Positions 3,937 to 55,869 of a stretch of DNA of 64,000 nucleotides are shown one piece after another; position 1 is the stretch's first letter, and each line of letters opens with the position of its first letter. The notes under the pieces are model-generated. The model was given only the letters and a program-made list of their open reading frames with translations, had not been told where the DNA came from and ran no database searches. A program made the translations under genes and the position numbers. This DNA comes from Klebsormidium nitens (taxonomy: Eukaryota > Plantae > Klebsormidiophyceae). The stretch lies in NCBI GenBank assembly GCA_000708835.1, contig DF237225.1, positions 50,784 to 114,783 of the forward strand, read 5' to 3'.

Positions 3937-5269
3937 TTACGATACTTACAGTCGTTCCGAGTTCGTCCTTTTGAGTCACTGACTGCCCGCTCTGTTTGAG
4001 ATTTTACTTGGTCTTGTTGATTTGCACTCATCCCACCATGCACAACTGACGGGATGGCTAACAGCGCCCGCGAGCTGCTCCAGGGTTTTTCAATCGTCTA
4101 TAGGAAAGCAATAACCGGTGACTACCGCCGGGCCAAATGCCAAGTCCTGGTTTAATTACGATTCCAGTCTGATTACGGCTTTCAAGTTTGACCATGCGCG
4201 ATAGGGGGAACGCGTATCATAACGCGGCACCCCTATATACTTCGCCATGCGCAATAAATCCTTTCCGATCTTGCATGTCAGCACATCCCGGCCTCTTACA
4301 CATTTGCCGTCAACGTATGCCCATGGCCGCCCGCCCGCCGGGCTATACAAAACTTTGACTGCGCGAGTCGTGTGAACAAAAGATCAACTTCGTGTTCTCA
4401 GTGATCCGGGCCGCTCAACTTGACGTGGGGAATTATCCACAAATAGACAGTTGTGGGCATGCACGAACGATCTAGGTTTAACGCGCCAGGTCATGCATAT
4501 GGGACTAGATCGTGAGTACCCCAACTTAGCTGCGGCCCACAGATTTGAATGACCCGGCGTGGCGTCCAGCTTTCATCGACCGTGCAGTGCACATGCAGAG
4601 TACGATCCGACGGACTCGATATCCAATTTCTGGTCCATCAATGGTGATCGCGGACACACCCAGCGCAAGATCAATTAAGTAAGCACCCGGCATTCGATCG
4701 CGACATACGTGGTAATGCCACACGATCGGTCGATGAAGATTACAAAGCAAATGAAGCTCAATATTCTTTGAATGTCAAGCTCGCGAGGCACAATTAAGCA
4801 GGTTAATACAAAGAGTATGCTTGATTCCATCAGACTGACCATGCAGAAGACAATTCAACATTGACCGTGCATGTTATTGGGGACGGTTCGAGAATCTCCA
4901 TGTACATGGCTCGTGCCAGGCCGAGCGTGTAGCTTCAACTGGTTTTACCTTCCTATTAGCGAAGCGTGAGGTCCTGTATGCGCGCGGCGGCCCATGAGGT
5001 GACTTCAGTCCTGAATCAGTCGTCCTGAACGAACTTAGCATGACTACTGTAGCTATCAAAACGCTTGCACGCATTGCCTCAAACCTCTCTTAGTTCACAA
5101 TAAAACCACCTTCTACAAAGCCGCGCTTTACAGCTCAAACCTTCACATGCCTACAATCTCTCGCGCGCCGCATGACGAAACCTTGTTTCTCGTGGCTTAT
5201 CAAAACCTTCGTTCCTGTGGCAAGTAGTCCACGTGACCGACTAGCCACGTCATATCGCCACGTCATAAC

Positions 5270-8200
5270 TTAAGCCGGTGACGGGGCCGCTGCGCCCTGA
5301 GCGGCGCTCTGACCGGGGCTCGGCGCGCTCGCGCCGTTGGGGATGGGACCGATCGCGTTAGGCGGGAGCGTCGGCGGGTTAACCGTGCTAACCGGGACGG
5401 GTCCCCCGATCGCGACGAGGGGCGCCACGACCTGCACCATTTGCTGAGCCGAGCCGGGCACGATCCTAAAGTTGGACGCATTACCAGTCGGGGGCTTCTC
5501 GACATGGGCCAAGTTTCCGGCGATGTTGTCGGACCCCTGGGCGATGTTGATATAGGGAGTGGTGGCTTGGAGCGTGGAGCTGATATTGTAAAATGGCGTG
5601 GGTGTGAATACGTCGGTGACGTTGGATGCCGGCCCGGTGCCGTTGGCGGCGACGGAGCCGTTGAGCAAGGTGACGTAAGGGGTCGTCAGCTTGAATAGAT
5701 AGTTGCTCGGGTCGGTGGTGGTATTGACGGGTTGGACGATGAACTCTGACGAGCTTTGGTACCGGTAGGTGGCGTTTCCGGAACCGTTCACCTGGAGAAC
5801 GGAAAAGCACAGCACTATTTAGATAAGCTTCGGTGACTCTCGCCACTCCCGTGGTCAATCCAGATGTGCCCAACATCGTACGATAATAGGTCTCAACCTT
5901 GCGGAAGGCAACCGTGGGCCGAAATGAGCAAACCCGTATTAAACGGCGCACAAGGAAAGAGAAGGAATTGATTGTTCGAAGCGGTTTCTTGAGCACAGTA
6001 GATATTACCCCCTCTTTTTATGTCTTGGAATACGTCATATTCTCGCAGCCCTGGGAAATCAGGCTCAACAACGAAACGACCAGGAAACAGCAGTGCGGTG
6101 CCTCGCTTCGATAAAACCGTTATCCTCGAATCGGACGATACTTCCGTCGTCCCAACGGCACAAGGTCGATAAAGAACATTCTCGAACAAGAGGAGGTAGT
6201 GGCGCATTTTCATTCCGAGAGGAGGTTAGTGGCAGTTTTCATTTTGCATTCTTTAAAAAATGACGGTACCCACCACGATGCTGTATTCGCCGGCGTACCC
6301 ACGGAATCCAAACTGGCCGTTGGCGTCGGTAGTTCCCGTCACGTTTTGCGTCCTCCACTCACGGTAATACAGGTCCTCCCACAGCTGGCCCGCGAGGCGG
6401 GGGGAGAAGTCCAGGTTGTATAGGCACTTATTTCCGGAACACGTGCCGTTATTCTGTTCCCAGTCGTCCTCGCCGTTCCAGGTTTGGGACAGCAACATTC
6501 CCTGTACAGCCGATGACGAATCTGAAGGTGAGTTTACGGACACTTGTCAAGGGACAACGTGCCGTTGATCGCTCGCCAGTCCTCCCGCCGGTCCTGGTTT
6601 GCTCTGGCAGCAGCCCGTGCGATAAAGGGGATGATGCAACTATGTCAACAATTGTTCGCACAGGTTCGACAAGATGTTCGACTGTAGAAAAGTACCCGAG
6701 ATGGACAATGAAAGGCAGGATACAGAATGCCTCCACTGACAGATGGTAGAACGGCGAGTCGAGAAAGCCTTAGGTGCTGTCACCTTTTCCGAGGACAGAC
6801 TACGTACCATTGCCTCTCGGGAGCCGTGAGGGCCAGACTATCCTGCCGGTAATAGTAAGGAAAGCGGCAAAACACCGAATTCTTTCACGGCAATACGACA
6901 TTTCTTTCTATAGATCTCACGTCCGGCCCACAGAAACAAACTCAGAGCACTGGGCGTTCCCACATGTAGGCCAATCGCGATGCAAGGCAGACGACACTTG
7001 GACCTTATAATTTTCTGCTTTTGGACTGGCAGGTTCTAGCAATGTTAAAAAGCTCTTCCGGGTCCCTTCAGATTTTTTCAAAGTAAGGATATTTCGGGGG
7101 TTTAGGGTCATCATACAGACTACGGAGCAGATGAAATGCGGGTTTGAGTATCTTGATTGCTGCGAAGCCCCTAAACGTAAAGCATTCCTTCCGTGAAGTG
7201 GATACTTCCGTCTCACCTTGACAGCCGGGTGGGCGAACGCTTCTCTCCAGATCAGCTCCAATGAATCCCTTTGCAGTTGCTCTGAGTAGGGTTCCACTGT
7301 CAACCTGAGGTTGATCTCAGTCATCCAGATGGGGATGCCGAACTGTCCAAGCTTGTCCAGTCCGTAGCGGAAGACGTAGGGTTGGATCTGTGTGAACTGG
7401 CCTTGAGCGGCAAAGGCACTGACTGGGCCTCCCTGCAGAAAAAAAAGAAATTCTTTTGGCAGGTGTGGTTTGCAGTGGGGTTGTCCTATCGTGCTCCGCT
7501 TGAAGAGATACCTGAGCTGACGTTTTGATTCCAGGCTTTTCTTTCCTCTTGCTCTCCACCTTACCTCTGGTGCGGCGCTTGGAAGGGCGTGCGCAGATTG
7601 GACGAGAGAAGTCTAATCGTAGGTGAGGAAAGCGATGTTTCATTGGACTGACAACATGCAAAATGCCTGTCACTCAAATAGGAAACAATCACGTATCGAA
7701 CGAGGGGCCGACCGCAGAAGCGACCAGGAGGAGCGCGCTTCCATTCTCAGCCTTTGAAAAGCCGCTCCGAGCGAGGGCCTTGGATCGAAACGGTCAGACA
7801 ATCAGTAAATCATTCCAGTGATTGATCTCTCCACTGTTCAATGGATCCACGAGCAGGAAGCTTGCAAGGCCACCTTGTAAACCCCACACGTGCCGACTGA
7901 CCTGTTGCCGCAGATACGTCACGAAGTCCATGGCTGCCTCTGGCCACACCGTGCTGTCGTCACACGCCTCGACCATGTTGTAATCGCTCAGGAACGTGAC
8001 AGCTGTCGGGTCCAGGGACTTGGTCACGTTGAAGTACCACGGACGCACGTCGAACCCGAGCTTCTCGTTGAAGTAGCGCTTGTGAATGATCTCGTTGGCA
8101 GGGTCCCATTGTTTGATCGAGTTCTGCGAAGAAGTAAGCCGACTTCAGGATTCAGGGTCTCTCAAAAGCGCATTGTTGGTGTGTTTTCGCGGCCGTCGTT

Positions 8201-43815: not shown

Positions 43816-46686
43816 TTATCCTGCCACTTTGAATTTCCCATTCCTACCTTCCCTGTGACAGCTCATGTGGCCCCCAAGGGCCGCCGACTGGAGGAACGTC
43901 AGCCCACAGAAGCGACACGTGTAGGCTGCCGGGCTTTCCACGCCCTTGCCCTCGTTTCTCGGCGCCGGCAAGGCTGGATGCACCGGCTCGCCCCAGGTGC
44001 TGACGTGGCGCTTCTGGGGCAGTCCGCGCCGCAGGTACTCGCCCGCTTCGTCAAAGCCCACGGTTTCTGCGTCCAAAAGAGAAAGGACGTCGGAAACTGT
44101 CCGCAATGCAGCAGTGTAGAGATTACAGCAGTGTAGAGAGGGACTTCTCGGCGCTCGTTTGATGAGAGCGACGCCAAAATCCTCTCTAAAGTGGGGCCGC
44201 ATTCTAGTATGCAAAAATTCGCCCTCGCTTTCATCCGTCGGCAAACGACTCAGGTGTCTGATCGACTTCTCACGGCCGGAATTGGTCAAACGGCTGACAG
44301 CTTGTGCCCGCAATGTCTTTCAATAATAAGACGAACTTCGAAGCATTTTCCTTCCTCGTACTGAAATAATGAAGGGCAGACTTGTTCCTCGAGCGTGCTT
44401 CTGTAGATCTTTCAAAGCTCGAGGCAGGGCTGTGCTGTTTCAGTTTTTGGTTTCAGTGACAGGCAGACCTCCTCAAGCCATTTAAGGACGGCATCTTGCA
44501 AAAAGCCCTCTCTTTGCTGCAAGCTCCAGAGTTCCAGGAACAGCATATTAAACCCCCATTTCTGTGCCTTCGCCTCTGATGATGAACATAGGGGACGCAA
44601 GCTCTGCAGAGACAGGTCAGTGCACTTCACCCACGCTCCACGTTTAATTGTAATTCATGACGGGACTTCAACAAAAGTCCGGCATTCTTTTCAAGCAAAA
44701 AGTGTACGTTCAGATCGGTTTTCACGGGACGTACCGTCCTCAGAAGCGACCCTTCTCTTTACGCTCGCAGAGTGCGGACGCTCCTCTGGCCTTGGCTGCC
44801 CCTCTCGCCATTCCCGACCGGTTCCCGGAAGCTCTTGCTCGGTCACACTTTGTTGCCCACAGCCAAAATCGCGCGTTCGATATTTCTGGGACACGGGAAT
44901 GCTCCCGGACACCTCACCAGCCCTCTCAGGATCCAGACTCCAAGTTCGAAGTAATTCCGGCTCCCTTGCTTCGGGGACCGACGCCCTGCGTGACGCAAGA
45001 CGCGGGCGCGCCCCCGTTAGATCGCCCCGCGTGCTACCGAAGCGCGACGCGGCCGCGTCCTCCGCTTCGCCGCCCGCGCTTTCTATCATCTCATGCTGCG
45101 GGACGGCCCCGTCCTCCAGTGCACCGCGCGCGAGGCTGTCAAACCCGCGCGGCAACGTGCCCGCGGCTTCCAGTCCTCCGCGGCCGCTCTGAGTCTCGGC
45201 CGCGGGCACCGCGCCCGATGGTCGACCGCGCGCGCTCGCGATGTCGCTCGCGGCCGCGCCGTTTTGTGATTGGCCGAGCCGCAGCGCAAAGCTTGGGTAC
45301 TCAGCCGCGGGCGGATTCCAGAGGAGGGGGGTTTGGGTAGGATTCTGGTCCCCGAGAGACAACCGGGCTACTCTCTCATCCTCCCAGGTCGGAATCACCG
45401 GTTCCGAAACACGCCCGTCGTGCACGGATCCCGCTTGCTCTGGAAACAGGCTCAGGGGCTGGACGTCTCTCAAATAATCGCCGTTCCTTTCTTCGCCTCT
45501 TTCTGTTTCCAGGCGACTAGAAATCCGCTGCTGCAGATGATCCGTCGCCACCAAGCCCGGCGCACGCATGGCCTCAAAGTCGGCGGTTCCGCTGGTCGCC
45601 ATTCTCCATCCTTCCGGCGGAACGGATTGGGCCCGCCCTCTGGCCGCAATGCCGAACGTCGCGCCTTCCGTTTCCGCACTGCCTTCCGCTTCCGCTCTCC
45701 AGCCGGATTCGTGTATCCTGTTCCTCTGAGAGGTTTGTATTGTTTCCGCTAGTCTCCCGTTCCCTTCCGCTCTTCTCTCCAATTCCCGCTCCGCTTCCGC
45801 TTCCAGTTCTTCCATCGGAAATTGCAGCGACAGCGAATCTTCTCCACACCTATGCCACGTGACATTCTGCCAGTCACTCTCTGCCCCCTCCGCGCAACGC
45901 TCTGGCGGCCGCGCCGCGCCACTCTCTTCCGAGCCGCGCGCGCACACCGCTGAATCCTTCGTTGGAATCTGGAACCGAAGAGCCGGGTTCGTCCCTACTG
46001 AGGAACCCAGGGAGACAATGGACGGCAGGTTTGAGTAGAACACGTCAGATGACGTCGCAGATGCGGCCATGCTCCATTCACCCGTATCCCTCCCTCGTCG
46101 GCCGCTAGAAAGTACCCCCCAGGGATCGCTGGCCCTGCTAAGCGGCTGCGCGACGCTTGGGTCGGACGGGTCCCAAAAGAAGCCCCGCGAGTTGTCGCCT
46201 CCCAAGGGCTTGTACCTAGGGAAAGTATGCATGGACCGGAGTGCCCGACGCTCCGTGTGATGATGTCGAACAGATTCGAACTTTTCCGCGGGGAAGGTGT
46301 TCGCGCGCGCGTAGATTCCTGACCTGGGAGGGAAGAGAGCTGGGCCGCTTCCCTTGGTTGCCAATTTTGAGGGGCCGGCCCCGTCGTGTTTTGCCGGGGG
46401 AGAGGACCGAGCAGCGCCAGGGGAGGGGGGGGTTGCTTCCAGCTCGGTTGACGAGAATGGCGGATAAAGTTCCAGAACCGGGAGAGATTTTACAGGCCAG
46501 CTGTGCGCGCGTGGATTTGGGTTGACATCCCCCTGGAAACCTTTCTCGATCTCGTTCCTCGGGCGCGAAGCTTTCACAGATTCGGTCCCGGCAGGAAACG
46601 GGGCAAGGACGGACATAGGATCGCTTCGAGCAGCCTCTCGTCTCCAGAGACGAGAGGCCTTCCTTTCTGTTTCACTGAGCCAAGGC
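43816..46686 (-). CDS. Large low-complexity protein with a C-terminal plant-type C2H2 zinc finger; exons ~46686-44708 and 44096-43816, probably more exons upstream (candidate ~47238-47112)
   Basis: A 641-codon ORF with a phase-1 donor at 44707 matches the acceptor at 44097. The last exon encodes YTCRFCGLTFLQSAALGGHMSCH (QALGGH-like). Confidence 0.7.
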
Positions 46687-49526
46687 CTGCAAACGAGAGC
46701 GAGCAGTCAATCCACGGTTTGGCAGGCGCTCTTGAAATAGACGGAGATTCCTGAGGATGAGCGCGGATTTATTAGTCAGTTCCTGCATCCATTCTACAGG
46801 CAGCAGAAATTCTCTATAGGATAAACATCTTTCGAAAAAACCATTGTAAGCGAAGGCCTCAATCTGCTAAGCTGGATAAAGGCACACCTCGAAGGAGACT
46901 CTATGGCTGATTTCTAAATATACTCAAGCATACAATCGTTTTTGGCTTTTTATCATCGTTCTATCTAGACAACAATGAATAGGCACTCATCCAAACTCGA
47001 AATTGATGTGCCTACAGGAAGGCTATTAGTAAGACAAATGAGGGACGTACGCGTCAGTAGGCGTTTCTTCTTCGCCCATCCTGTACGTGGAGTGGCAGTC
47101 AAAACTGCTCACCGACCACTTCTGGTAACTGCAAGAGGAGACACAAGGCTGAATGCACGAGCAAAGACAGTTTCCCGGTTTCCAAGTGCAACCTTCCTTT
47201 GCAGCGCAATCTCTCCCGCAAACTCGATCACTGCACCTTGAAACCTCGGGAGTCAAACTCCTTGAAAGATGGTCATACTTCCTGACAGGAACGAGGTTTA
47301 AGGGATTGGATGGCTTCTACGGTAGAGAACAAATGTCAGCACCTTTTACTTTCCAGGGACCTTTACATTAGGACTTGCGCTCCACCAACTCGATCTTGAA
47401 TTCCTGCTTCTCATTCCTTGAAAGTAAAGGCAAAGAGCTCTCCTCAATGTGTTCTTCCACTTGTACCTCAGGGCTGACGAGGCAATTCCAGAGGAAGCAA
47501 ATCCAATCAGTCAGGTTCTCAGCTGTTTGAAATCTTCGCAGCCCTGTCAAGCTTGTCCCACAGGAGGCGCTATCAATACATCATCCAGGTAAGATGCTGT
47601 CTTCCGCTCTTAAAAAGGAAGGATGCGGTGCTTACCCAAACTTCGACCACCAACCACGCCTGTGATCAGATCCTTGACTTCACCTTGTGTCCCGACTCCA
47701 TTCAACCGTAAATCACCTTCAAGCTCTCCGCTCTGAACGTCGTTCCCTCAGCTGAGCATTCAGAGCCTTCCGTCAGCTCTCGAAATCTCCCGGCTTGCAG
47801 ATCTAATGTCTCCGATGAGGTTGAGAAGCAGCTTCAGACCGTTACAACGAACATGCACAGCCCTACTATGGGATGCTGAGAAGTTCTGCCCGACAGGAAG
47901 CACAGTCAGCTATGGCTTTTGACTTCGTACCCGATACTCCCTTGTTCTCCTGAGAGAATGCTGCAGAAATGTCGCGCGCAGAGCGCCTGACACCTTTCCT
48001 GAGGATCTAGCTATATATGGAAGAGCCGCAAGCCGCATGGATTCAAGGTATCCGAAGTTTACCGAAGATGGCAGCTGTTTCAAAAGTGATTGCACCTACT
48101 ATGCAGTGAACTGATCTCAGAGAGCGCTGATGCAACGCATCATTGAAAATTGAGCTCAGCCTTAATCTAACGAGCCGACGCGCGACGAAGCTAGTTCATG
48201 ACAACACCTTTTGCTTTTTGAATCTCCAAGTGGCGCGAAAGGTGCAAGCTTATCAGGTAATCAGTCACGAGGCTAGGCTACCTGAAACGGCCACTGACGA
48301 TAATTTTGGCCTTTTCACAAGGGACATCGAGACTTCGAATTCGTTGGTTGAAACTAGTAGAACAAACCAGTCACCGACGACGTCTCGTCTTTGACCTCTT
48401 TCACGTCACGTGCGCCGGGCCTCGTGACATGTGCCAAAAGACCCACGACATGCAGCAATGAAAAATGCTCTCAGATGACAAGCACATGAGTGCGCAGGTC
48501 CAGCCCAGAACCAATGATGATGAGATGAGGTATCGAGGTCAGCAGCAGGCCAGTCCAATGTTTTTCGTGCATGCGTCGCCGGACGAGTTGAAGACAGGAG
48601 GGTCGAGAAGACAGGCCGGAGAGGTCCAGCTTGGTCTGCGCTTGAAATCTTCATTGGCGGAGGCCGGAACGGTGAATCTCAAGGGGATCCAAGTCGGGCC
48701 TCCCGGCCACCTGGTGGAGGGCACGCGAGCCCGGGCCACCCGGCCGCCTGCCGCGCCAGACCGGTCAAGCTTCCGCTGCGCTGCGCCAGAAGTAAGCTGT
48801 CGGATCGCACCCCTCGGCCGGAACCGGAGCGTCCCTCAGTTGCGGACACCACAAGACGGTATAATTATTGGACTAGCTAGGCTCGGAGTCGTGGCGCTGC
48901 CAGCCTGGGCCGGACTGGTCTGGATGGCCAGGCCCGTGGGCCACTCGGACACCGTCCGCAAGCGACTCGAGGAGCCTGCTGCACCAAACCCTAGAATTGT
49001 CCGCTGAGAGCGCCAGCCTACCATATGCATGCATTGGCATGAGCATGGGCTCCTTTCACAACATTCTGGAAAGCTAGCGAAGTGAGTTTACATTCACTTC
49101 TTGCTGGCTTTACATTGTTAGCAGTGGCCAATCCTGCATGGCAGCTATGCTTTGCAGAAGCTTTAGTTGACTGATATGTCAGGATGCCAGATCAATCGAG
49201 AAGCTGGAGCTCAAAGTCTAACATTGGGACGTGCCGCATTGACTGGACCTACTAAAGTTCGAACCGCAGTTGGCAGAGCTGCCCGTTCCAGCTCCTCTTT
49301 CGCATTATGAGTGAGAATTGCATTTTCGCACCAGTACATTTTTAGGTGCTCAGGACCCTCACCACAACCTGAAGTTTGCACCTCAGAAGTTGGTTTGCAG
49401 CTTGATAAGAGTGCACCAGCTGCCTCGTCAAAGCTTGAATTTGGATACTACCGAAAAGTGACGCCTGTAATCCAGCTATTGACGCACTCTTGTGGCTCTG
49501 AGATTGGCTGGCCTTCATTTCCATCC

Positions 49527-52500
49527 ATGGAAAAGTCGGGCCAAGCTCACAAGGCACATGGAGCTTCCCTGTTCATCTTTGGCAGCGTCCTGGGAGGAAC
49601 AGGTTTTAAGCCAGGCACTCTATGTAAGTGGAAGCTGGTGGCTGGGCGAGACTGGGTGCTGGTAGCTGGGGCAATCAGCGGGAGCACGCAGTGTGGCATG
49701 CCAGGAGGGGTGAGGTTCCAAAGCTCACTACTGTACCACCTTTTCTTGCCTTCATACAATCCTGAAAGTAGTTTTATCTTTTTAACCTGACTAAGAAAGT
49801 ACAGACAGAGTTCGCTTACAGCTAGTTCCTGATATTGTAAGAAATCTGTGATGCAGCGGTGGTCGCAGCTTTGAGCGGTTTAATCAAGGGTATTATGTCG
49901 AAAGCCCTGCCGAGACGGGTGCTTGATCACTTTCTGTTCCACAAGGAAGTGCTGATTGTGAACTTAGTTCGGCTTCTTTATCTGTTTCATCCTTAGGAGT
50001 CAGATTCCAGCAAAAGTACCCCTTATGACTTTTGAGAACCTATCTTCACAATTACCATCAAGAACGGCATTGATGAAAGGATCTCCGATCGATCAGGGCA
50101 GTGCAGGCTTGTGATGGTTTCGAAAGAATGTTTGCCCTTTGCAACATCTGTTAGAAATGCACAGTATGTACGATCATCCACAGGGGCGGTCATATGTGGC
50201 TAGCTGCAGTGCAGCCACTTCAGGTCCTCCAGAATAATGAGGTGAAAGGAGCCACTTAAATGCGTCCACTTGAACCCGCTAACTTTTTGGGAACTCATGT
50301 TTCAACTCCACTTGAAGCCGTTCTCCTCATCTCTCCCAGAGTCCTCTACTGCCGAACGCCTGTAATTGAGCACAAGCGTGCATGAAGTTAGAGCATTCAC
50401 CAAGGTTCAATGTTTAGCAGGCCGGTCCCAATCCTGAAGCTTTGTGAAAAGGTGATTTGGCAGAATTTCTTAAAAGCTTGCCCTCTCTCGTAGTCGAAAG
50501 TCAGTGCCTTTCGGCCGCAGGACGAGAAAAGCAATGTGAAACCATGAGAGACCTGACCACTAACCCATTTCTTAGGGCCAAAGATGCTGACACATTCCGG
50601 AATCGCTCCCTTGTTAGGGATTATGCACATCTGATCAGACGATGGGTGTCTTTTGCAACTAGGTAGAGGGAGACGATCTGGCGCTCTGGGAGCACCCACT
50701 CAATGTGCACTTCAAGACCCAGACGAGCCAGGGCTGGCCGAAGTTCTGCTTCACAGTCTTCCATCGCAGCCCGTACTTGGGACGGGACGAGTTCCGTGAG
50801 TGAAAGCTTGTGTTTTTCCAAGCTCCTAGCGGTTCAGTTTTTCAAAGACGTGGTACGATCCCATCGGCTCATAAGGTTGAATCAGTGGAAGGAATATGAT
50901 GTGAACAGTCGACTTGTGACACCTTTGTCAATTCAGACGTCCAACACCAAAATCCTTCAAGGTCGTAGAGAGTGACTTTTCCTGTCCGCTGCAATTCCTT
51001 CTCGACGACTCCTTCGTTCAAGTCCAACATGACTAGCTCATTCAGCGGATTGGCGTGATCTTTCTGAACGAGAACTGTAAAAAAAGGACCTGCAAACGGT
51101 ATGATCAGGAAGAAGCGAACAGGGGAATAGTCGGAAGCAAGACATATGCGGTTGGGCATCGTCCGAAGAAGGTGGAGAACAGGACGGAACAGGAACCAAG
51201 AATTGACGTCATATTTGACAGAAACAACGAACCTTCAGAAACAGAGAGACACACAGGATCACAAAAACACAGCAAGACAAGGAGAAAAGAGGCCGATAAC
51301 TGTTTCATGCAAGAAAGTAACGACAGACGGAACTTTGTCTTGAGCAGAGGCTTACGGCATCTGCGCTCTCCCGACCACCGCCGGGGACCACGAGCTGACC
51401 TGTCCGACGTGGCGGCCCAACGACCGGGGGAATCGTCGGGGGGACGAGATCGCGGGCTTCTTCACGGGGAACTTGCCCGAGCTTGCTGATGAGTCCTTTA
51501 TCCACGATCGAGACGAAGCCTTCAGGTGGGTACTTCAATACTTTTGGATCGCTTTTGAAGGGTTGTTTGTCGAGGTGCTGAGCCACGAGTGACAAAGGCC
51601 CCTATGATCATTGTTCTCGCTTAAACTCGTATCGAACGTGATTCGCTTTCAGGTTTTTTTGCGGTGCTTTTGACTTTGACCTCTTGGCTTTGCACATATT
51701 TGAGATCAAGATACTTCCAGTCATTGGCCTTTCAAGCCTCCATGGCAACAAGCACAGCGTTATTCCCTCGATTTGTTATAATGGACTCCGAAGCAATGTA
51801 ATGCGCATTCTCTCGTTACAACACCCTCCGACTTTGCGCAAACCAACTCATTGACCCTGATTCCCTCTCTGCTTGCCACGTGGCAGCGCCTCCATCCAGA
51901 CCGTCGGCATGGGCACGGTCCACCTCCGGCTGAGCCTCCTCTTTAAAGACTTCGACCATTACGCGCCGCTGTCCGGTCTGACACGTGGCGCCTTCTCGAG
52001 CGGCCTGCGCGCCTCGCGCAACTTCACGCGGAGGCGGGTGCGGGAAACCGGGCCTGACGCGGGCCTGACGCAAGAGGGGGCGGGTGCCTCGGGGGACGAA
52101 GCAACCGGGCAGGAGGAGCGGAATTCCGCTTTTCGGTCGCAACGGAAAGGGGAGGTGTCGGAAGGGGAGGAGCGGCGGCGGGCGCAGCTCGCGGACAGAA
52201 TGATTCGGACGGTTACTAGAAATAGGGTTAGGGACACCGACTCCGAAAGGGAGGGAGAGGGGTCTACCTTTGAGTCGAGGCGGCTGTCGAGGTCAGGGTC
52301 ACACAACCGGGCGGGTCTAGAATCGGGTTCGTCGACAGACCGGGTCACCGACAGAGTTACGAACAGGTTTGCGGACCGGTTTGAGACAGACAGGGTCAGC
52401 GAAAGGGTTACAGAGAAAACAACCGAGCGCCGCCAAAGCCGAAGGAGCTCTGACGTCACCTCCGATCGACTCCTCTCACCTGAAAGAGCAGCCGACTCGT

Positions 52501-55041
52501 CGTCCAGCCGAAGACGATCTTCATCCGGGGGGCCAGAGAGCAGGGTGCCCGACCCCCTCGCTTATGGGGAATCTCGCTCCAGGGGGCCAGAAAAGCGGGG
52601 TTCTGACCCTCCCAGCGAAGCCCGCGGAGTGTTCGCGCGACTGGGGCGATGCTTGGCGGAGGAGGGCGCGAGCGCGCGCGCGCTTTTCGAGGGCGCGGAC
52701 GCGGACGCGAGCGGCGCGCTCAGCCGGACGGAGCTGCGGCGGCTCGTGCAGCGGATTTTGCCGGGGGTGTCGGCTCGCGAGCTTCAATACGTTCAGGTCA
52801 GCTCTTTGGGCTTTCCATCTTCTCGGCAGGGCCAGTGGTTTTTGGCTCTTTTTGAATTTGTCAAATGAAAAAGAGCCGTGAAAGAACGTAGGCTTTGCGG
52901 GATCCTCGGCCCGCGAGCTCAGATGCGTTTAGGTGAGCTCTTAGGGGTTTCAGATTTTAGAGCTTTGAAAATCGAATGTTGAAGGATCGAAGCTGAAGCT
53001 GCGAGCGGGGTTTGCGGATTTACAGTGGAGCTACTGTCATTCCTCGCGAGAAACAGGCCGCTAAAGCTTATAGCACCACATCCAAAGCGAAAGCATCGGT
53101 GCGCAGTCCGTAATGCGGGCCAGAGATTCGCGCGTGTGCAAGCGAACCGTCGTCCTCATTCTGATCTGCTGCTGAGCAAACGTGATAAGGCAATCCCCCC
53201 CCACCAAAGATTGATAATGCATTGCGGCCTCAAAGAACCTGCTGCGAGTGCGGCGCCGGACGCGTCAGTTGGCCTTTGGGAAAATGGAATACGAGATTCA
53301 AATCGTAGAACAAACAATGTGCAAGAGCTGCCGATGTCGATTTGCTGAGGCGTTCTCTGCGGACGTCCGCAGCTCATGTTGGACGAGGGCGGCACCGGAC
53401 GCGTCACGTGGCCCGAGTTCGAGGCGCTTGTCCAGGCGTGCGCAAGCAGCGAGCAGGCGTCCCGGCAGCAGATCCGAGTCGGCTCCGCGGAAGCGGACGT
53501 TATGCGGACGCTGGTGAGCTAACATTGGATCGCCTTACGTCTCTGTAGCGCAACCTGCGGATTGGGAATACTCCTTGTAAGCAGCCGGTCCTTGTTCTAG
53601 TACGACCCGCCCGCATTTGCCCCCTGCTTTGGCGGCGGTGATGAAGCGGCAGCCTGAAGGAGTTTTTCAAGGGCGTTGAAGGAGACTCTGCCTGTAAAGC
53701 GAGGGACGCACTGCTCAAGGAGCATTTTAGTTCCGCTGATTATTTGAACTTCCATTCGCCGGTGTGAACTATGTTCCCGAAAGTCGCGGGAAAGCAGGTT
53801 TCGAGATTCCGGACAGCCACTGAGACGACTGCTTTGGGCGCTCGACGCGCTTATGAAGCCGAGATTCTAACGCGCTGCGTTCCCGTCGACATTGACAGCG
53901 TTTCATCGCGTCGGACGACCCGGCCCGTGTGCGCGCGCTGTTCGACCAGTACGACCGAGACAAGAGCGGTTATCTAGACCAGGTCAGCATGCCACGTAGC
54001 CTTTTCAGCTTTCTCTTTGAACGAGATTCGACCATTATGATCGAAACACAAAGCGGTTACCTTGACCGGGTCAGCACGCCACGTTGCCTTTTCAGCTTTC
54101 TATTTAATCGAATGCGACCAGTACGACCGAGACAAGCGCGGTTATCTAGAGCAGGTCAGCATGGCACCACCATCTCCTTCCTTTTCAACCGCTTCTTATA
54201 GCAGCTAAAATTGGTCTTCGGTCCGGTACGCGGCGTTCTTTCGGGGGGGATTCTCCGTTCCGTGCGTCGAAGATGCTTTGGAAGGCACTTTCGGTCAGCG
54301 ATCTCGAAGCGTTTGTGGACTGGCTTTTGCAGACTTGTCAAAAGGAGCACTACGTTGTGCGCTTGAGAGGGATGGTGTGATAGCGCGAAGCGAACGTTGA
54401 CGTTAGCTTATGGAGCGAGCAGCGACGGACGGTCGGCTTCTGTGTGAATACGACGCTTGAAAGTGTTGCTACGATTCCACGCACCTTGTGAGTGGGACGT
54501 CATGCGCTGGCTATTCTCTTCCGATCACATTGTCCTCGACTGGCATTCGAGGGATAGTTTGCGCATCCTTGATTTCCAGTGATCGATTGATGCAAGTCTG
54601 GCCTTGTGACAATATTTGGAAAGGATATGGCTCATCGCCCAAACCTATCCGTTTCGCGGTCTGCCTTCACCCCTCTGAATGCCACGCCTTCCCGGCTGAA
54701 GGCCGATCTGAAGGCCGATCTCCTCGTAGAATCTCTCGAGGAATGTGGGTGCTTTTGAACTCAAAGTGCTCACTCGTTTGCTTTTTATCTTGATTTGCTC
54801 AGAACCTCGAGCCACTTGTAACCCTCGGACTGTTTGGAAAGGCTTTGTCGGGCGTTATTGACCATGCAAATTGAAACGGTTGTTGACGCAGGCGGAGCTA
54901 CTATCAATGATCAGGGACCTGATGCCCCCCATGGACGTCCGAGACCGTCGATTCATCATCGCCAATCTCGCGTTCCGAATGGACGCGGACGGAGACGGGC
55001 GCATTCGATTGGACGAACTGCTTGGAAAGCTCAAGGAATAG
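49527..55041 (+). CDS. B9D2: B9D2/MKSR2-like B9 (C2) domain protein fused through an R/S/E-rich linker to four EF-hands; exons 49527-49709, 50663-50795, 51348-51525, 51887-52796, 53373-53513, 53899-53982, 54892-55041
   Basis: Spliced text: SLFIFGSVLGGTGF...LCKWKLVAGRDW.LVAG...GSTQ; ALWEHPLNVHF.TQTSQGWPKF; AYGICALPTTAGDHELTCPTWRP; IQTVGMGTVHLRLSLLFKDFDHY. This follows B9D2 along its length. EF loops are DADASGALSRTE, DEGGTGRVTWPE, DRDKSGYLDQAE and DADGDGRIRLDE. All exon lengths and phases close correctly. Confidence 0.85.
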
Positions 55042-55869
55042 AGGCCAGATCTGCCGGCTGCATGATTTACGTAGATACACACGATTTGCAGCTCTTATGT
55101 TTGCACAAAACTTTAGATGATAAGACGGCCTTGAAGCATGAAGGGACTTGTACCACTGGTATATCAAGAACAAGGGCAGAATGTCGAATAATTGACCGGT
55201 TCGCTTCTCGGTAGATGTCCTCTCGAGAGATCTAGTCGCAAGGCGCGGCTGGACCGAGGGCAGCTTGACTCCATGGTTTGCAGACCGACTGGAACCTATA
55301 GTCGGTCCCGACTTTCGAGAAGCACGGCTTAGAAATTGCACATGTGCAAAAAGCGTGGGGCAAGTTGCTGCTGTGAGCTGAAGAAGTCGCTTCTTACTTG
55401 ATTCCAAGCTGGGAGTTTGATCGGTAGAATGTATACCCAGAATCAAGTAGACAAGCCAGCTGGCTTATGATGATCTTTGAGTGTCAGTTATTGCTCGATC
55501 TCATGTAAACCTGTGACCAGCCCGGCCGTAAGACATGGATGTAGATACCTGTCTAGTTCGCCGGACAGGACCGTCCGACGAGTCCCGCAAGGACATTTGG
55601 CCGGATCTTATGTACGGTAGTATGGGCCCATGCGAGGCTAGCTCTGTCCATGGATGACGGTGAAGACGGAAGGAGATTCCTCACCGATTTTGCCTTTTGG
55701 GACATGTCATGCAAATCCGAGCAGAACGAGGATAACCGTAGTCACGGCGGGGTGCCGCTGCGGGCCTGAGGTCAGACGGACTGTGAGTGGCTGACTCGAG
55801 TGCCACGCCGCCCGCTGCGGCTCGGTGCGGGTCACGTGCCAGGCAAGCGCAATCTCAGCGGCCCGGCGG

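Follow-up and report, generated by a model that had tools for sequence, protein, structure and literature searches.

Does a streptophyte alga carry a ciliary transition-zone protein of the B9D2 type that is joined to its own calcium-binding module, and what would such a protein do? The question is raised by a locus of Klebsormidium nitens on contig DF237225.1, within a 64,000-nucleotide (nt) stretch of the forward strand that is called the window here. From the letters alone, the first-pass annotation had read four exons as a B9D2-like domain and three more as an addition of EF-hands. We followed this B9-EF gene through public transcripts, related genomes, domain and fold predictions and the literature. 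For calcium signals, for example those that trigger flagellar loss, the route to the ciliary transition zone has yet to be settled, and a natural calmodulin-like module joined to a core subunit of the MKS module would be a direct handle on it.

Taken whole, our reading is highly probable. It is that of a real and expressed seven-exon gene, whose product has an N-terminal B9-C2 domain, a charged, fast-evolving linker of about 230 residues that is predicted to be disordered, and a C-terminal calmodulin-like module of four EF-hands, and would serve the gate of the zoospore flagella.

Gene structure, transcripts and conservation

The gene occupies window 49527-55041 on the + strand, and each of its introns has GT...AG borders. 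The seven exons total 1779 nt, equal to 592 codons and a stop, with no internal stop. The start ATG is at 49527 and the stop TAG at 55039-55041. Upstream, no earlier in-frame ATG follows the preceding stop near 49308. The exon coordinates proposed by the first-pass annotation match to the base by the open frame, the AG/GT borders and the transcript joints. The features are as follows.

49400..49526, + strand: 5′ untranslated region (UTR), minimum extent; contigs reach about 360 nt further upstream
49527..49709, + strand: exon 1, start codon and first B9-C2 strands; Pfam match, donor GT at 49710, transcript joint
50663..50795, + strand: exon 2, middle of B9-C2; Pfam match, AG/GT borders, transcript joints
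51348..51525, + strand: exon 3, B9-C2 core (AYGICALPTTAGDHELTCPTWRP...); Pfam match, 71% identity to Mesostigma viride Mv04018
51887..52796, + strand: exon 4 as a whole; single open frame of 303 codons
51887..51968, + strand: first part of exon 4, last B9 strands (GTVHLRLSLLFKDFDHYAP); predicted strands, alignment, conservation
51969..52652, + strand: middle of exon 4, 228-residue R/S/G/E-rich linker, predicted disordered; open frame, fold confidence, substitution ratios
52161..52235, + strand: predicted conserved basic helix within the linker (…EERRRAQLADRMIRTVTRNRVRD…); fold and near-invariance
52653..52796, + strand: end of exon 4, EF-hand 1 with its loop DADASGALSRTE at 52698-52733; Pfam, fold, substitution ratios
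53373..53513, + strand: exon 5, EF-hand 2 (degenerate loop DEGGTGRVTWPE at 53382-53417) and inter-lobe segment; joints, Pfam
53899..53982, + strand: exon 6, entering helix of EF-hand 3 and first ten loop residues (DRDKSGYLDQ); Pfam, joint
54892..55041, + strand: exon 7, end of EF-hand 3, EF-hand 4 (loop DADGDGRIRLDE at 54982-55017) and stop; Pfam, PDB
55042..55300, + strand: 3′ UTR, minimum extent; transcript contigs

Parts of the stretch are contained in 16 public runs from six studies, and four runs from four studies were aligned to window 49400-55300. Two of them each hold one contig that crosses all six introns at the predicted sites (X1 record 1 of 2497 nt and X5 record 5 of 2603 nt). The other two, X6 and X7 from two further studies, have the same joints in shorter contigs. 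Across the four runs all six introns are removed as predicted; the joint 49709/50663 is present in every run, and the joints 52796/53373, 53513/53899 and 53982/54892 are observed likewise in transcript contigs. Although the runs are not catalogued as RNA, their contigs have no other possible source, because the introns are precisely removed at GT..AG.

At window 49400, X1 record 1 is already at its position 361 and X5 record 5 at 375. The 5′ UTR is at least about 490 nt, provided that the contigs are collinear with the genome upstream of 49400. At the 3′ side, the contigs end at 55272 in X1 and at or beyond 55300 in X5, X6 and X7. The contigs of the four runs show no joints besides these six, inside exon 4 or elsewhere, and no recurrent break within exon 4. 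The concern that transcripts might end or splice out before the linker is answered by the X1 and X5 contigs, which run through it to exon 7.

Short low-depth unspliced contigs were also seen in some runs inside introns 3, 5 and 6 (51591-51843, 53565-53762 and 54042-54830). Intron 6 is covered in all four runs, in three of them with overlapping contigs. These could be pre-mRNA, intron retention or DNA carry-over.

Assembled contigs alone cannot prove a single molecule. Therefore, independent support was sought in evolution. A word search with exon 4 gave matches only in three Klebsormidium-like relatives.

L002, a Logan run: 593 residues, 86-96% identity to the window by exon
L001, a JGI metagenome: 653 residues, 72-86% identity in the domain exons and 46% in exon 4
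L006, a JGI metagenome: close relative of L001

In L002 and L001 the seven exons recur with identical phases, ATG and TAG, and no internal stop. L006 has all seven exons in the same order. Identity in exon 1 is 90% for L002 and 72% for L001. When the window is aligned as DNA with L002 or L001, only the exons align and the introns do not; exon 4 aligns with L002 as a whole, at 85% nucleotide identity over 992 nt. On these alignments, the fusion is older than the split of at least three diverged Klebsormidium-like genomes and is not private to this one.

The ratio of nonsynonymous to synonymous substitution rates (dN/dS) was calculated by the Nei-Gojobori method for the parts of exon 4, in three pairwise comparisons among the window, L002 and L001. 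The linker gives 0.22, 0.35 and 0.46, the EF1 part 0.04-0.16 and the B9 end 0.03-0.13. All length changes of the linker in L002 and L001 keep the frame, including a duplication of 46 codons. By these ratios, every part measured, that is all of exon 4, is under purifying selection. Taken together, the conserved frame, the dN/dS and the intron divergence in practice exclude both a chance open frame and a merger of two genes. The continuity of the exon 51887-52796 through about 230 linker residues into EF1, claimed from the outset to need no guessed splice, is borne out by the open frame and the spanning contigs.

Two candidate artefacts were considered and rejected, a chance open frame and a chimeric contig. 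The frame is kept in the relatives at linker dN/dS values of 0.22-0.46, and the two other frames of the linker contain 4 and 9 stops.

Domains, linker and origin of the fusion

The N-terminus was tested with the Pfam B9-C2 family (PF07162), which has a cutoff of 27 bits. Exon 1 scores 27.9 bits at profile positions 1-45, exon 2 scores 34.6 bits at 54-89 and exon 3 scores 45.6 bits at 95-147. Each of the three exceeds the cutoff alone and their profile positions are collinear, which places the protein in the B9-C2 family. In exon 4, the last B9 strands align where the domain ends in the relatives P0003 and P0002. Two strands are predicted there, at exon-4 residues 2-6 and 10-14, and the segment is invariant in three genomes. 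This domain end (GTVHL…FD.Y) presumably resembles that of human B9D2. L002 and L001 share the ATG and the MEKS start, and in L006 the alignment covers all of exon 1.

With exon 3 as a 58-residue query, an exhaustive HMMER search gave 45 matches. The best full-length ones are Mesostigma viride Mv04018 (71%), P0003 (a protein of an intron-less alga), Cymbomonas, Myrmecia bisecta, Bryopsis and Scenedesmus. The streptophyte affinity fits Mesostigma as the best match. The three exons were entered separately in a quick maximum-likelihood tree, and each is placed in a green-lineage clade of 99% support. Sequence searches of the PDB with exon 3 and the B9 profile found no solved B9 protein, and exon 3 had no usable match in the ESM Atlas.

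The linker of 228 residues is rich in R, S, G, E, T, A and D, with 45 R, 35 S, 23 G and 23 E. Exon 4 was folded with the three-sequence alignment. The predicted local distance difference test score (pLDDT) is below 50 for 211 of its 303 residues, which include most of the linker. The predicted fold opens with two short strands, has one helix further on and forms a helix-loop-helix at EF1 with pLDDT of 72-81. The single helix covers exon-4 residues 92-116 (window 52161-52235) at pLDDT of about 64 and coincides with the sole strongly conserved island of the linker, …ADRMIRTVTRNR.R.TDSE…, where R104-R113 are nearly invariant in three genomes.

This predicted helix is basic, and its hydrophobic residues are spaced 1-5-10 (M-x3-V-x4-V with three Arg). 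Such spacing in a basic helix recalls calmodulin targets. More speculatively, and as an idea not a result, the helix could be an internal target of the EF-hand module, making an intramolecular calcium switch. The 46-residue linker module that holds the RMIRTATRNR helix is the one duplicated in tandem and in frame in L001 (at about 5075-5275, in exon 4).

EF-hand loops were read by a criterion of 12 residues, with D at position 1, D/N/S at 3 and 5, G at 6, a hydrophobic residue at 8 and E at 12. The loops of EF1 (DADASGALSRTE), EF3 (DRDKSGYLDQAE) and EF4 (DADGDGRIRLDE) fit this canonical pattern. The EF3 loop is split by intron 6 as DRDKSGYLDQ|AE, with AE coming from the start of exon 7. Hence the proposal that three further exons add EF2-EF4, and that EF1, EF3 and EF4 are canonical, agrees with the loops as read from the sequence and as conserved in the relatives.

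In Pfam, EF1 matches EF-hand_5/6/1 at residues 264-289 with E of 0.009-0.13, improving to 1.2e-5 in the L001 orthologue P0047. Exon 5 matches EF-hand_6 with E of 0.31, exon 6 EF-hand_6 with 6.4e-5 and exon 7 EF-hand_7 with 7e-4. These matches are below the gathering score per exon because the exons cut the domains. Against PDB sequences, exon 7 matches an Entamoeba calcium-binding protein (E of 1.5e-6) and calmodulins too. With both, the module shares two EF-hand pairs in about 190 residues and canonical 12-residue loops. It differs from calmodulin-like proteins in being tethered to another domain and in its degenerate EF2. The likeness to such four-EF-hand proteins is generic, with no closer subfamily identified.

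Where did the fusion come from? The first-pass annotation took B9D2 for a single-domain protein of about 175 residues, to which the loss of a stop codon or a gene fusion had added the rest. The former holds for animal-type sequences. The animal-type B9D2 clusters retrieved are of about 167 residues and end with the domain, whereas the protein here has about 400 more residues of linker and four EF-hands. Animal and protist B9D2 (MKSR2, stumpy; PMC7550698, PMC4092220) resemble it in having one B9-C2 domain at the extreme N-terminus. In contrast, the nearest green-lineage relatives are of 349-549 residues, with long, charged, low-complexity extensions that are mostly C-terminal and in some N-terminal. 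This corrects the common assumption, as the green-lineage B9D2 is usually not a bare 175-residue domain. The long green-algal homologues are the following.

Mesostigma viride Mv04018: 511 residues
Myrmecia bisecta KAK9823440: 349 residues
Scenedesmus KAF6261642: 419 residues
Cymbomonas KAK3240796: 549 residues
Bryopsis GMH39087: 355 residues

These homologues are nearest by sequence and tree and share the B9 domain with a long, charged, low-complexity extension. They differ in having no EF-hand or second Pfam domain, even at lenient thresholds, although some of them are automatic gene models that are possibly incomplete, and the end of the Mesostigma model looks unreliable. In several of P0002, P0003, P0009, P0031, P0037, P0050 and P0051, the B9 domain is closely followed by a shared G-G-L-S/T motif and then by basic residues.

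Because green algae normally have a long-tailed B9D2, it is unlikely that this alga alone gained its tail by losing a stop codon. Of the two proposed events, the simple stop-codon loss is thus improbable, as a tail would have pre-existed in green algae, and the joining of an EF-hand module is the more probable. More probably, the module was added in the Klebsormidium lineage to an already existing green-lineage B9D2 tail. What is new is the EF-hand module, and no lineage other than this one was found to have it.

The absence of EF-hands outside the four Klebsormidium-like genomes is moderately supported, not strongly, by the 45 matches to a 58-residue query that include automatic models. Among the six papers found to mention both B9D2 and EF-hands, none describes a B9D2-EF-hand fusion. 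The other retrieved B9 relatives have none either. Two metagenome scans gave no further relatives and no stand-alone donor EF-hand gene. A word search with the B9 region of the Mesostigma protein, over proteins of 281-894 residues, returned only the Mesostigma protein itself. The word search with exon 4 gave no protein of this genome among those of 184-584 residues, a range that the 592-residue product lies just outside; the gene may lack a public model, or have one that is split or otherwise altered.

Published work already describes EF-hands on other proteins of the transition zone. Paramecium RPGRIP1L (PMC7093003) and NPHP1 and NPHP4 (PMC3495828) likewise have lineage-specific EF-hands on a C2-domain protein of the transition zone. 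They belong to the NPHP/RPGRIP1L group and not to the B9 trio of the MKS module, and their EF-hand module differs too. Interest in the fusion is limited, because such additions are known and one of them is dispensable for deciliation.

A proposed role at the flagellar gate and the alternatives

In animals, B9D2 is the bridge between MKS1 and B9D1 within the MKS module of the ciliary transition zone. The three form the MKS1-B9D2-B9D1 complex (PMC7550698; PMC4092220), and the transition-zone complex proteins have been reported only from ciliated organisms (PMC4092220). Klebsormidium grows as a non-flagellate filament able to produce biflagellate zoospores, and its genome contains ciliary genes (PMC4736243; bioRxiv 10.64898/2026.02.05.698958). 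The description of the host as a flagellate alga has to be amended accordingly; it is a filament, flagellate only as a zoospore (PMC4736243). Calcium has been linked to this structure before. The EF-hands on variants of NPHP1 and NPHP4 were read as calcium responsiveness (PMC3495828), and in Paramecium the MKS-module proteins control calcium-triggered ciliary shedding (PMC7093003).

Both the calcium sensing and the transition-zone location of the B9-EF protein are what we infer from its sequence. In the proposed mechanism, the B9 domain would serve as the anchor that keeps the protein in the MKS module, at the base of the zoospore flagella. The flexible linker would let the calmodulin-like module reach its neighbours or the internal helix. 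Upon a calcium rise, the tethered EF-hand module would change its conformation or partners. Calcium signals might thereby be coupled to the gate function, flagellar assembly, or flagellar shedding or resorption.

A stronger version is that a calcium sensor is built into the B9 core, with the linker helix as its internal target, and that a calcium pulse switches the MKS module. Such a switch may open the gate, or bring about flagellar shedding or resorption when zoospores settle. We offer this version tentatively and regard it as doubtful in full. If true, the B9 trio would have its first subunit that calcium can switch, and this in the streptophyte line, where the land-plant relatives dropped the whole module.

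Several points weigh against a calcium-sensing role at the gate. The EF2 loop DEGGTGRVTWPE is non-canonical, having Gly at position 3 and Thr at 5 with two ligand positions lost. In L001 all four loops are canonical, EF2 included (DEDGNGRVTFSE), whereas EF2 is degenerate in the window and L002, where its decay is therefore recent. Domain searches were run exon by exon, and the fold is that of exon 4. The B9D2 orthology is likely and not fully closed, having been judged by comparison with B9D2-type and MKS1 proteins and with no B9D1 reference. In Paramecium, the C-terminal EF-hands of RPGRIP1L are dispensable for deciliation (PMC7093003), and by this analogy EF-hand modules on transition-zone proteins need not control shedding. 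Land plants no longer have any of the known transition-zone complex proteins (PMC4092220). If the transcript runs were of vegetative, non-flagellate filaments, the expression would argue for a role outside the flagellum or not limited to it.

The last point leads to the main rival, in which the fused protein is real and has taken on a non-ciliary function in the vegetative filaments, for instance as a calcium-regulated scaffold associated with a membrane or the centrosome. The B9 domain, being C2-like, would then be merely a membrane or protein anchor. The spliced transcript in runs of at least four studies agrees with this, given that the vegetative stage is non-flagellate (bioRxiv 10.64898/2026.02.05.698958; PMC4736243). 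In this very alga, the intraflagellar-transport proteins have been argued to be reused outside flagella (bioRxiv 10.64898/2026.02.05.698958). The land-plant loss of the whole transition-zone set (PMC4092220) also implies that the module is evolutionarily labile in streptophytes.

However, strong purifying selection acts on the B9 domain, which groups with the ordinary green-algal B9D2, and the restriction of transition-zone complex proteins to ciliated organisms (PMC4092220) speaks for a ciliary place. Some of the sampled cultures may have been forming zoospores, and low basal transcription of flagellar genes is common. On balance, the non-ciliary job is unlikely, though a serious contender. 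By this gene, a streptophyte alga is seen to keep, express and elaborate a transition-zone protein that was lost in mosses and ferns (PMC4092220), which helps date the loss.

A second alternative concerns the paralogue. Were the B9 domain a diverged MKS1 or B9D1, the protein would be placed differently in the complex. Exon 3 alone is indifferent, scoring the same 48.5 bits against a fish MKS1 fragment (P0027) as against B9D2-type proteins; MKS1, too, has a tail beyond its B9 domain, and the comparison was made with no B9D1 reference. On the other hand, exons 1 and 2 score 30-40 bits (E of 1e-5 to 1e-8) with B9D2-type proteins but only 14-15 bits with the fish MKS1 fragment, which is not significant (E above 6). 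The B9 domain starts at about residue 15, and the N-terminal region of about 300 residues typical of MKS1 is absent.

Two of the nearest relatives carry the UniRef name B9 domain-containing protein 2, the nearest named relatives being B9D2. Among the matches of the exon 3 search none is named B9D1, and a word search with the B9 alignment gave no matches and hence no named B9D1. We consider a misassigned paralogue quite improbable. The opening claim that the N-terminus is a B9 domain of the B9D2 type is supported by the Pfam matches of exons 1-3 and by exons 1 and 2 being nearer to B9D2 than to MKS1. MKS1 was examined as an identity in its own right and rejected, as exons 1 and 2 have no significant match to it and its N-terminal region is missing.

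The weakest alternative is hardly credible: two neighbouring genes, a B9D2 and an EF-hand one, with overlapping transcripts merged by the assembler and the open linker a by-product of G+C-rich, T-poor DNA, would be allowed by contigs that are no proof of a single molecule, by a low-complexity linker of 62-66% G+C with an in-frame Met (…ADRMIRT…), and by the database search giving no full-length public protein for this genome, but the 303-codon frame has no stop in the linker (against 4 and 9 in its other frames), the exon is kept uninterrupted in three further genomes while the introns of the two compared no longer align, the linker has constrained dN/dS (0.22-0.46) with every length difference in frame, the 46-codon duplication included, a terminator, a promoter and a second 5′ UTR would not fit in the space, and exon 4 shows no recurrent internal joint or contig break.

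Neighbouring sequence and intron repeats

Upstream of the B9-EF gene, a 641-codon open frame lies on the - strand at window 44691-46616. The 5′ part of this frame has 68% nucleotide identity to the start of L002, so the gene order is kept in L002. Just upstream of the gene, window 48465-49007 is a stretch of 63% G+C with a 180-codon open frame.

In intron 6, the 3′ end of exon 6 and its donor site are repeated twice (window 53943-54167). One copy, 54115-54167, has 94% identity to 53943-53995, and the other, 54052-54111, has 87% identity to 53965-54024. Both copies retain GT and part of the coding sequence of the EF3 loop. Similar repeats are found in intron 4 of L002, as copies of the acceptor region of exon 5 and the donor region of exon 4.

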